Part shown: positions 17,233 to 24,594 of the stretch, piece by piece
How positions within the stretch are numbered: the first letter of the stretch is position 1
Layout of the letters: each line of letters begins with the position of its first letter
Assembly (NCBI GenBank): GCA_023515725.1
Contig: JALDTO010000288.1
Span: 131,214 to 195,213, forward strand
DNA: 64,000 nucleotides
Reading direction: 5' to 3'
From: Amoeboaphelidium protococcarum X5
Lineage: Eukaryota > Fungi > Aphelidiomycota
Notes under the pieces: generated by a model
Seen by the model: the letters and a program-made list of their open reading frames with translations, nothing else
What the model was told of the DNA's origin: nothing
Databases searched by the model: none
Program-made: the position numbers and the translations under genes

Positions 17233-20200
17233 ATGGAGTTTAATTTGAATACACTTATCAAAGTGAAATATGGCAGTGGTGTCAAATAATTGCTTGAATT
17301 ATTGAGTAAAGATGAAGAGTGGTTGGTGGATATGAGTGATATAGTCAAGATGTAGGTACTAACTGAAATTCTCAAGTTGCCAGTTCATCATTTGCCGTAG
17401 AATTTGCGTCATAATTTGGAGTAGAGTAGTGCTTTAATTCTATAGAACTCTCTCGGCTCTCTGGTGGATGAAGTAAAGCGGCTGTATGGTGGTGATGTGA
17501 AATAGCGTTTACAAGGGATAGAATCAACTGTGCGTTTGGTCATGGCATTGTGTAAATTTCATCCAGCCATGAAGTTGGATAGTTTATTTGTCTCATCTTT
17601 GAACAATTTTATTAAAGTATGCCAGAAGATTATTAAAGTTTTATCGAGAGAATATTCAGAAACTTTAAGGTAGTATTCCATAAAGTTGATTGTGGCGGTC
17701 ACTCCCATAATAGTCAAAGTGCCTAATTTGGTTGAGCTCATTGATCCACTGTAGCAATTGAGTGCGTACATCATGTTCCATTTGGCTACCGTACTCAGTG
17801 ATTAATCTATTTGGCCTGGCTCTGATGTGAATTCCATGACGTACTGCGCTTAAATATCCTTCCATAATACGGTTTTGGCATAGATTATTTCCAGTAGATG
17901 TCATGTACGCAATACTCAAGTTTTAAGTACGGTGATGAATTTTCTGCGCAGATTTGATCCTTCCAGACTGCCTTAGAAATCTTTATTTGTGGACATCATC
18001 GTGAGCAGTTTGTAGTATGATGTCGACTTCTGGTCCAACTATATTGATGAGCTTAATAGTTTACTTGAATGTTGCCATGATTTATGCTTTGTGGATATGA
18101 AATACTTGGATCTGCTTACTTTTATGGTTAGAGTATTCCACGATATTGATATACAAAGGCTTCATGTAGTTTTATCTTTGAGAATTGAAGATTTGGGTAA
18201 TGAGTATTTGAAATTGTCTCGTAATGGAACTCAGTTCAAGGCTGAATAGAATATAGTCTTTATGCCCAAATTGTACAACATTCTAATCCCAGCCGGTACT
18301 ATGGCTGAATCTGTGTTTATTGAAGAGAGTCAGTAGGTTTTACTCTGGGATTTTAAGGTTGATCTGCTTTAGATTGCAATGTAGGTATTATCTTCTGATA
18401 CTAAGCTGTAAACTACTGATTCGGCTATTGTACATAGTCTATGCTGTCATACCAGACTTATCAGTGCTTTGATTGAACATGAGTTGATTGAAATGCCAGA
18501 GTCTGTAATTGAATTCTGCTTTAATCTATCATCCACGTTGGCTATGAATAATCAAGGCGCTGAATTTGTTGGTGCTACTATATAGCTGGCAAATATTGTC
18601 TTTTTCTACGCGCCATCTCTAGTATTCTCTCTAGGATCGGAATCATTCTTCCAAGTGGACACTATGAAGAGAATTTGGATGCTTATTCAAGACCATGCGG
18701 CTACTGGCAGCACGAATTGTGAAATGTATATCAGTCTTCTTTCGTCAATGCTGCATATGCTTCGCTCTCAGTGCCTTGTATCCAATGTTGCCAGTGATTA
18801 GGTTGATCCACTATCATTGAACGTGGGCAAATAGATTGCTCTGTTTATTGTGTCTATACTGACAGCTGGTCAATGGAGGAGTAGTGAATGGAAGTGTTAC
18901 ACTTAAATAAGTCAACTAATTTACCTTGTTGCTAGTGATTGTTCTCCTTTGCTCGCTTACAAGAGTGGTGAATAGTCTCCTGTTTAATTGCAGTAGCCAG
19001 TTGCGTAATTTGGAGAGATTTAAAGTTTACTGATGAATCCATAAGTGATGTAATGTATAGCTGGTAACCTTATCCCCTTAGAGTTGCTGTTAGATGTTGA
19101 TGGAGACGATTCTTATAATGCTCTTGTATTGAATATCAAATCATTGATTTAGTATGTCGCATTGCAGAATCAAATGACATTGGATGGCTGTGGATTAGAT
19201 TTCGCCCAGGTTTTTGATGTGATCATGGCCTATTTATCAAATGAAGATTTGCATTTGCTTACCTTAAATACTCTTCAGTTGGTATCCGCTCTTGGTAATT
19301 CTGCATCATCATCATCATCATCGTCAAACTGTAATTTGTCATCACAATAATGGATATCTATTGTGGTTGCTTGTGTGAAAATTGTGTCTCTTTAAAGTTC
19401 AAGTACGCCTGCCTTATAGATTCCCGCCTATTGCATCCTAGCTTGTAATGGTCTTAATCTGTACGTAGATTAAGATCATGTTAAACAGGTGATTGATCAG
19501 TTCAAGTCATAACTATAATCTAAGCAGAGTTTGGATATATTCACTGGTCATCCTCTTTTGATGCACGTTAATTTAAGTGCCATCAATCGCTGGCTGTTCA
19601 GGATGTCTCCTGAAGTGCTGGATGATCTGTGTTACACTGTATAGCAGCACATTGAAGCACTTTTGAAGGTTATCACTTTTCAGGAAGATTCTGTCAATAC
19701 TTTCTATTAAATTAGTTGTATTGCACAAATGTTGGATATGATAAGATTTGCGGCGCCGCGACTAAAGTCATTTCAAATTGGCAGCTTTGTATTTTCTAGA
19801 CATATTATGGAGCTTCTGGGATACAAAGTTGGTACGGATGTGGATTAGCTACTGAATGATTTGTAAGAAGATTCGAGTATGAACTTGGAATGGTTTAGAA
19901 ACATCAATTGGGCTTGCGGTGATTGCTCAGTTTTATCTCTGAATTATGGTCATTCATTCCTGTATGATGTTTCTTCACTAAAGAATTGTGGTCTACAGTC
20001 TTATAAAGTCATTGAAGAGATCAACTTTAGTATGTCTGCCAGGGATTGTCGTATCCATTGTCTCACGTCTTGGGCAGAACTTTTAATTACCACCATCAAT
20101 GGCGGTGGGCGTAACTTTAATCAGAAGCTCCTGACCGGATCGCTTGATTAAGCCTCAAATTTAGCCATGTGCCTGTCTGGATCGACACTATTACTTTCTG

Positions 20201-20328
20201 TTCAATCTGCATCATCTGTCAATCGTATGCTTTGGACTGTGTGCTGTCACTTGATTCAAAATCTACCTGTCGACAACTAGCTGCTCAATCCGAAGGACAC
20301 GCTGAGAATTATTGAAGCTATCCTGTGA
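17233..20328 (+). CDS. NUP188: Nucleoporin Nup188-like, N-terminal and middle part (1031 aa)
   Basis: Helical protein; NILIPAGTMAESVFIEESQQVLLWDFKV resembles the Nup188 IPxGTxG..VxW motif, and NYGHSFLYD...INFSMSARDCRIHCLTSWAELL resembles YGxxYxYD...NLNLSxxDxxxxLxxSW. Confidence 0.65.
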
Positions 20329-20483
20329 CAAATATTGATTAATAGTTACAAAGTATGGAAGTGCGTATTCATTTAAAGTTATCACAATTTGTTTGCTTTT
20401 AGATTCTTCTTTTCTTATCTTGATCGTCAAAAATCGTTAAAAATTATAGTAACGAAATTTATTGGCTTAGTGGTGAAAGAACA

Positions 20484-22627: not shown

Positions 22628-23127
22628 AAATGGCTTCTATAAGTGCCAGTTCTCGCGAGATATTGCTAGTTTTAGGAATTCAGATCTCCTCAGTCTATTG
22701 CAAAAGATTGATTAATATATATATATACTTTACATTATGAGTTGTATTGGGCGTGATGCTCCACTTTCGCCGGTAATATTACGACCAGTTGATTATAACT
22801 ATGAGTGGTTAAGTGCTAATTTCCGTCCTTTGTTGATGGCGGATTTTTAAAGAGTTGAGCATTTGGCAAAATTAGCCTTCATAACTTACAGCTATCGAGT
22901 ATTCACTTTACTAACTTGCACATTTTATGCGCCAGTCAACGCTAATTGCTGTACAGGAACGCAAATCTTGCCTATATGCTTATAAGACAAAGCGCACACG
23001 GGACGGCCGAGGGAGATTTTTCTCTACGCTAAACTTAACCGTTTGCGTCTTCCTTTAAGCACTGCACTCACTTTACTTCTCTCAATTATAAGAGCGTATA
23101 GTAATACTAAAGTTATTTATTCTAAAA

Positions 23128-24594
23128 ATGGTGAATTCTGTAGTTAATATATAAGGATTGAGTGTGGATAAGCTGAGATTTGTTGCATTGTTATTGTGCA
23201 AGACTCGACACAATAATGATACGTAGTTATTGGATGTGTACTATCAAGTTGTGGAATAGTGCCTACTCAGATTGACTGCATCATCAAGTGATAGTTTCCC
23301 GCTGGTTGTTGATTCTATTCAGTGTCTTCTTATTTCCAAGTCATTGTATATGGATTCTTCACGGGTGAGCAGTATCTTGGAGAGATGCCAGTTCAGTAGT
23401 CGATTGGCTGATATCCTACGCCGCGACTATTAGAGTGTGCATAGTCTGCAGTTGATAATCACCCTGCTGGTTGTTGTGTTGGATATCACTGAAGATTTGC
23501 CATTTGCATAGAACGATGAAGTTCTGTAATTGATTTTAACTCGCGGTATGGATCTTGGTGGATAGAGCAGTAGTAACTAATTTGACAGTTTGAATAGGCG
23601 CCTTTGCTTATAGCTGTCCACTCTATTGGTGGAAAAGTTTTCATAACGTTATAATTGGATTCTGTGGGTTATCTTGGATAGTTTTAGTAAAAGTATTTCC
23701 TCGAATCGTTAATTTAAGAATACTTTACTAGGCAGATTGTTCAATAATGGTACTTAATCGCTGGATGTGTTTAATGTCGCAATGATCAAAGAAGAGTCTC
23801 AGCTGGTCAATTCACTTGCTTGTCAATATAATGTGTGGATGAGTTAGAAGAGACTTTATGCGGCGTAATTTATAGCATATTGTATTACAGGAACGCGAAT
23901 GTGTATAGATCAACTCAAGATTGTCGATCGTAATGAAACTTTATTCGCTAATAGTAGCGATGATGGAACTGGTAATAAGTTATAACTAGACGGTGACAAT
24001 ATTGACAGTGTTAGGAAGATTGTTGCACTCAATCTGAATAGTATATATGCTCTGACTGCTGGCGTTGAGGCGTTTGATGTATTGTCAAATGTTCATCATT
24101 AACTGTAATAATCATAAATAATGCTGGACGATACGAGATTTAGAGATATTCTAGTTCCTTCGCTGGATATGGCCATTCAGTCTGCTGATTAAATGTCATT
24201 TGGTCATATTATTTACTATTTGGCGCATATCCGCAATTAGATTAAGCGCTTATTGGATTCTGAAAGTAATAACAATAATATCGCTATATTGAATGAACTA
24301 TTTTATTATTTTGAGGCTGCTAGCACGTTCTATGTATCGTAGCTGTTGTTCATTGTCTCCTCCAGCTTTGACACTTAACTCGAGATGGATGGTGGCAAAG
24401 AGTAGAAATACAGCAAGATTCATAGGGAGAATATTGCATTTGAATGCGGAAGTGATCTTGTTGATGCACTGAGCTCTCTACAGGACCTATTCCATGATGA
24501 ACTTTCATCCGGTCAGTAGTAGTTATACTCGTCCAATTTGAAATACCTCAAGAGCCTGCAAAAACAAGTGGAAGACTGTATTGATTAGCAATGA
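23128..24594 (+). CDS. NUP188: Nucleoporin Nup188-like, C-terminal part (488 aa)
   Basis: LVPSLDMAIQSADQMSFGHII...LFYYFEAASTFYVSQLLFI...IAFECGSDLVDALSSLQDLF parallels the Nup188 C-terminus (PSFGTLL...FTMENCFYLLISQA...ELSSELSTLLSSL). Confidence 0.6.

Follow-up and report, generated by a model that had tools for sequence, protein, structure and literature searches.

A putative split of NUP188 into two genes at the Tower/Tail boundary in Amoeboaphelidium protococcarum

In the usual view, Nup188 and Nup192 are each one giant solenoid and serve as hubs of the inner ring of the nuclear pore. Nup188 is a single polypeptide of about 1650-1850 aa, and its hallmarks include the binding of Nic96 R2 and Nup145N R2 together with inner-ring localisation. 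In the window, i.e. the whole 64,000-nucleotide stretch analysed here of DNA from A. protococcarum, an aphelid that parasitises algae, two open reading frames separated by two other genes raise the question of whether NUP188 can be carried by two genes, as had been suggested in an earlier note on this DNA. Gene fission is a known process, and the surprise would lie in its target.

In this genome TAA and TAG encode glutamine (table 6), and translation with this code confirms the lengths, the common strand, the TGA at 20328 and the ATG at 23128 previously reported for the two frames, here called ORF A and ORF B. The four genes follow each other in the order ORF A, NIT2, TFG1 and ORF B (Table 1), and the gap between A and B, given before as 2.8 kb, measures 2799 bp. 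A homeolog on contig C264 has the identical gene order, and a second assembly (GCA_023515745.1) holds two further copies in which the order is unchanged, giving four copies in two assemblies. The TGA of A and the ATG of B are conserved in all four, ORF A is 90-95% identical among them, sharing both ATG and TGA, and the A-to-B gap amounts to 2781, 2799, 2818 and 5625 bp. The public annotations of both assemblies list A and B as separate hypothetical proteins. The layout is a real and stable gene arrangement. No additional copies of A or B were found in the genome, no remains of the four genes were detected elsewhere in the window, and A and B have no upstream DNA in common.

Table 1. Features of the locus, in window coordinates
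Feature	Position	Strand	Description
ORF A, 1031 aa	17233..20328	+	42 TAA/TAG read as Gln; ends with TGA; all-helical ARM/HEAT-type solenoid; proposed Nup188 N-terminal ring and Tower
Candidate SH3-like insert, ORF A aa about 334-386	18232..18390	+	IPAGT, with W 19 residues after P
NIT2-type carbon-nitrogen hydrolase, 301 aa	20484..21457	+	PF00795, E 3e-21; 68-nt intron at 20491-20558
TFG1 / TFIIF-alpha, 290 aa, C-terminally short	21755..22627	+	PF05793, E 6.5e-13
Non-coding spacer, 500 bp	22628..23127	+	Presumed promoter and 5' UTR of ORF B; indels between copies, no conserved reading frame
ORF B, 488 aa, own ATG	23128..24594	+	Helical solenoid; proposed Nup188 Tail domain

The two intervening genes had been described as complete, and this holds only loosely: NIT2 and TFG1 both lie on the same strand as A and B, but TFG1 is short. 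The GTAAGT donor of NIT2 is present in all four copies, and the public gene call on L011 of the second assembly also gives a protein of 301 aa. TFG1 is an intact ORF of 287-294 aa across the four copies that matches only positions 91-219 of the 528 in PF05793, in the N-terminal half. A separate C-terminal part of TFG1 was not found in the genome; a weak TFIIF match on C146 was rejected as low-complexity noise.

Comparison of the window with its homeolog, at a dS of about 0.3, yielded dN/dS ratios of 0.157 for ORF A, 0.235 for ORF B, 0.07 for NIT2 and 0.09 for TFG1. The ends that face each other across the gap gave synonymous to non-synonymous counts of 7:2 in the last 40 codons of A and 3:1 in the first 27 codons of B. 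Both ORFs are therefore fast-evolving genes under purifying selection. They are not paralogs, a relationship that the earlier note had named as an argument against fission, the best BLAST E-value between them being 0.02 in a set of eight proteins.

By sequence, ORF B returned nothing for Nup188 in Pfam (whole protein and windows), in PDB sequences or in the ESM atlas, where only generic solenoids came up. Its AlphaFold (AF2) model, built from three near-identical sequences, is of low confidence (pLDDT 46.9, pTM 0.31). Among 48,161 representative chains, the best natural structural match to this model is 4kf8_B, Nup188(1445-1827), with 209 of 258 residues aligned at an rmsd of 4.7 and a Z of 11.8, a value obtained with a low-confidence model and below the advised level, since with this tool a Z under about 13 may be generic for helical repeats. 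Designed repeat proteins tie with 4kf8_B at Z 11.8, and 104 chains reach a Z of at least 8. The alignment runs from start to start, residues 1-414 of the model against 1447-1823 of 4kf8_B, and covers 81% of the chain, whereas most of the other structural rows involve only about residues 1-195. A yeast inner-ring chain (1327-1679) aligns at rank 34 with a Z of 9.2, and is presumably Nup192, as its numbering exceeds the 1655 aa of Nup188. Nup188 was absent from the list returned by Foldseek alone, and a shape search of the ESM atlas with the B model gave nothing related to it. The 4kf8_B match carries weight because a target named beforehand ranked first and started in register, and from the modelled structure ORF B is likely to be the Nup188 tail.

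For ORF A, no match to Nup188 was obtained in Pfam, PDB sequences or the ESM atlas, where the entries closest to it are MEI1/PRD1, URB2 and some unnamed solenoids (0.91-0.94, low recognition). The model of residues 195-625, from an alignment of only two near-identical sequences, is an all-helical generic solenoid (pLDDT 54.6) resembling importin-alpha-type and other solenoids, and Nup188 is absent among the rows listed in its fold search. An SH3-like beta insert in the N-terminal ring defines Nup188, and Nup192 lacks it (PMC3679522). Compared with the insert of the Myceliophthora/Chaetomium Nup188, ORF A has only a candidate site, which lies within the 50-aa bin of the protein that varies least (0.96, four copies). 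This site has no PF21094 or PDB match and shows no beta strands in the shallow AF2 model, in which helices are predicted; the missing strands mean little, because the model had two near-identical sequences to draw on. By eye, three stretches of A look Nup188-like and stand in the expected order: IPAGT with a W further on at about aa 352-372, then a WR motif around 548, and last a Y-D followed by an SW-LL pair at about 905-950. The claim that A carries N-terminal and middle Nup188 motifs, and B the C-terminal ones, was confirmed by no sequence search. Judging from these motifs, together with size, position, strand and fold class, ORF A would probably be the N-terminal and middle part of Nup188.

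The Pfam search covered stop-free pieces, whole proteins and 93 windows, at E-values up to 10 and with the HMMER filters on, and neither the whole proteins nor the windows of A and B matched Nup188_N, N-subdom_III, SH3-like or Nup188_C. PF11894, the Nup192/Nup205 family, likewise has no match in A or B. The stacked HEAT/ARM alpha-solenoid fold fits both the B model and that of A 195-625, and is not specific to Nup188. No orthologs of A or B were found outside the species, the database matches being only the A. protococcarum copies; the library-wide HMMER query combined a piece of A and a piece of B in a single profile, which is weak for remote relatives. Metagenome scans with A and TFG1 gave no relatives. 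A full-length Nup188 elsewhere, which would speak against a split, was not found with four Nup188 families, nor was any other candidate in the genome, in scans that are insensitive and also miss A and B. In the literature covered, which omits most subscription journals, no description of a split NUP188 or an aphelid Nup188 was found.

Unlike A and B, both Nup192 and Nic96 of this genome are readily picked up by sequence. Nup192/205 is encoded by single ORFs of 1529 and 1530 aa, in two homeologous copies (C162:263137-267726 and C154:62100-66692), whose matched parts are colinear with the 1667-position PF11894 profile and run 55-60 positions behind it. The C-terminal pieces of this Nup192 have no Pfam match; from its length, it probably holds its own tail. 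Since it is long and colinear with PF11894, any end that it lacked would be shorter than B. Nup192/Nup205 is a paralogous solenoid, and the presumed yeast Nup192 chain does align to B; in this genome, however, it has its own gene, without significant similarity to A or B (hhalign and phmmer). One Nup192 piece cross-matches PF21093 (Nup188 subdomain III) with an E-value of 0.006. Nic96 is found at C164:122199-124994 and on C136; an N-terminal linker, about 270 aa long, precedes its Pfam domain, and an R2-like segment may be recognisable.

The natural point of comparison is the Nup188 of Myceliophthora and Chaetomium (4KF7, 4KF8; PMC3679522; 10.1101/2021.10.26.465796), whose crystallised tail (1445-1827) the model of ORF B matches in extent and start. 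That tail is built of HEAT and five ARM repeats with a capping helix. It is a helical solenoid, as are A and B, and the combined size of A and B is in range. It is a single polypeptide, whereas A. protococcarum has two genes. With 1519 aa, against 1655 in yeast and 1827 in M. thermophila, A and B together are 140-310 aa shorter than fungal Nup188, and from the motif positions the difference probably lies at the N-terminal Head. Because of this shortfall, part of the Head may have been lost or may be encoded by a third piece. A division between gene products has a precedent in Nup98-Nup96/Nup145, which, depending on the lineage, is either a single precursor or a pair of products or genes. There, however, the domains on either side of the split are independent and the division lies at an autoproteolytic site, whereas the cut in Nup188 would fall in a continuous helical stack.

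Of the readings that would do without a fission, an assembly error or a decaying broken gene is very unlikely and has almost no chance of being correct, given the constant order in four copies from two assemblies, the dS of about 0.3, the open frames and the dN/dS ratios far below 1. It is also quite improbable that A and B are exons of a single Nup188 mRNA, brought together by trans-splicing or by cis-splicing across NIT2 and TFG1 as nested genes, even though they stand in the right order and on the right strand and all four copies have a donor-like GTATGC at 20225. The 34 codons beyond this site are under coding constraint up to the conserved TGA, and B is coding from its ATG; the frame upstream of B is not maintained across copies, and the acceptor-like TAG just inside B that is nearest to its start is lost in two of them. 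The distance to be spliced out would be 2.8-5.6 kb, against 68 nt for the local intron, and no complementarity between the 3' flank of A and the 5' flank of B is shared between copies. Both public annotations treat A and B as separate proteins, although gene callers rarely model nesting. In Giardia, Hsp90 and dynein are trans-spliced, the coding parts of one protein lying at separate places. A and B differ from these genes in having no conserved splice signals or complementary flanks, and in each having its own start and stop. These sequence signals argue against cis- and trans-splicing, which we disfavour, in agreement with the lower rank given to trans-splicing in the earlier note.

More depends on what the two proteins are. 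ORF B could be a stand-alone Nup188 tail with no relation to ORF A, which would then be an orphan solenoid. In that case the genome would have lost the N-terminal part of Nup188 or carry it elsewhere. Support from the search tools exists for B only, the atlas neighbours of A belong to other solenoids, and the A model has no strands at the proposed SH3-like site. Against this, a model from two near-identical sequences makes the absent strands uninformative, and a same-strand neighbour of complementary size and fold class would have to lie three genes upstream by chance. Moreover, every yeast Nup188 truncation failed to rescue, only delta-Tail and delta-Head being reported at the rim (10.1101/2021.10.26.465796), and we find a stand-alone tail fairly unlikely. 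The other reading is that neither ORF is Nup188: A and B would be fast-evolving ARM/HEAT genes without relation to each other, and the 4KF8 match would be a chance match between helical repeats. It agrees with the blank sequence searches, the pLDDT of 47 of the B model, the many chains at Z of 8 or above and the unrelated results of the atlas shape search. However, 4KF8 comes first among the natural chains and is covered in register from its start, over a stretch of the B model about twice as long as in most other rows, and we consider a chance match unlikely.

The explanation that we favour, and hold to be rather likely, is a fission of the NUP188 gene at the Tower/Tail boundary, with A and B as separate chains. 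Of the fission as proposed in the earlier note, two separate, selected, non-paralogous solenoid genes and a moderate structural support for B have stood, while a Nup188 match for A has not. Under a fission, the N-terminal ring with the Tower would come from A and the Tail from B, each translated from a separate ATG, and NIT2 with the shortened TFG1 would have come between them by local rearrangement. Insertion of a NIT2-TFG1 segment would fit the short TFG1 that ends beside the promoter of B. A tandem-duplication route has no support, with neither remnants nor shared upstream DNA of A and B.

A cut at the start of the Tail would leave the first helix pair with an exposed hydrophobic face, which is normally packed against the repeat before it. 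Nup188 nicked by protease still behaves as one particle (PMC3679522), and in solved structures Nic96 R2 places one helix on the Nup188 Tower and another on the base (10.1101/2021.10.26.465796). For these reasons, the two chains would most likely stack onto each other again where the helical repeat is cut, with the Nic96 R2 linker as the bridge between them. Whether the locus encodes a natural Nup188 of two chains, divided within a continuous helical stack and held together in the pore by re-stacking and the Nic96 linker, is in our judgement an even call. Yeast NUP188 is non-essential, and truncations fail in sensitised strains (10.1101/2021.10.26.465796). If true, chain continuity between Tower and Tail would be dispensable and linker nucleoporins could hold a scaffold together; a natural split would mark a cut site testable in yeast nup188/pom34 strains, and would explain homology searches that score Nup188 as missing in this lineage.

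Several minor features were noted around these genes. One copy in the second assembly carries a 2.8-kb mobile element (L014:6770-9590) at the start of the spacer, between TFG1 and an intact B. It is flanked by TA-rich direct repeats and holds an intron-containing 801-aa gene on the minus strand, which by eye has the R-K-HxxR-H-Y pattern of tyrosine recombinases and appears Crypton-like, with no Pfam match. Directly upstream of the A homeolog, at C264:508490-510997, is an 835-aa ORF that none of the other three copies has. Split RuvC and zinc-finger motifs, seen by eye, make it seem TnpB/Fanzor-like, and its pieces have no Pfam match. Downstream of B, a CABLES-like cyclin gene on the minus strand (window 24662-26300) ends 68 bp past the stop of B, and its 5' part contains an in-frame TGA, across which the public annotation of the other assembly seems to place an intron.
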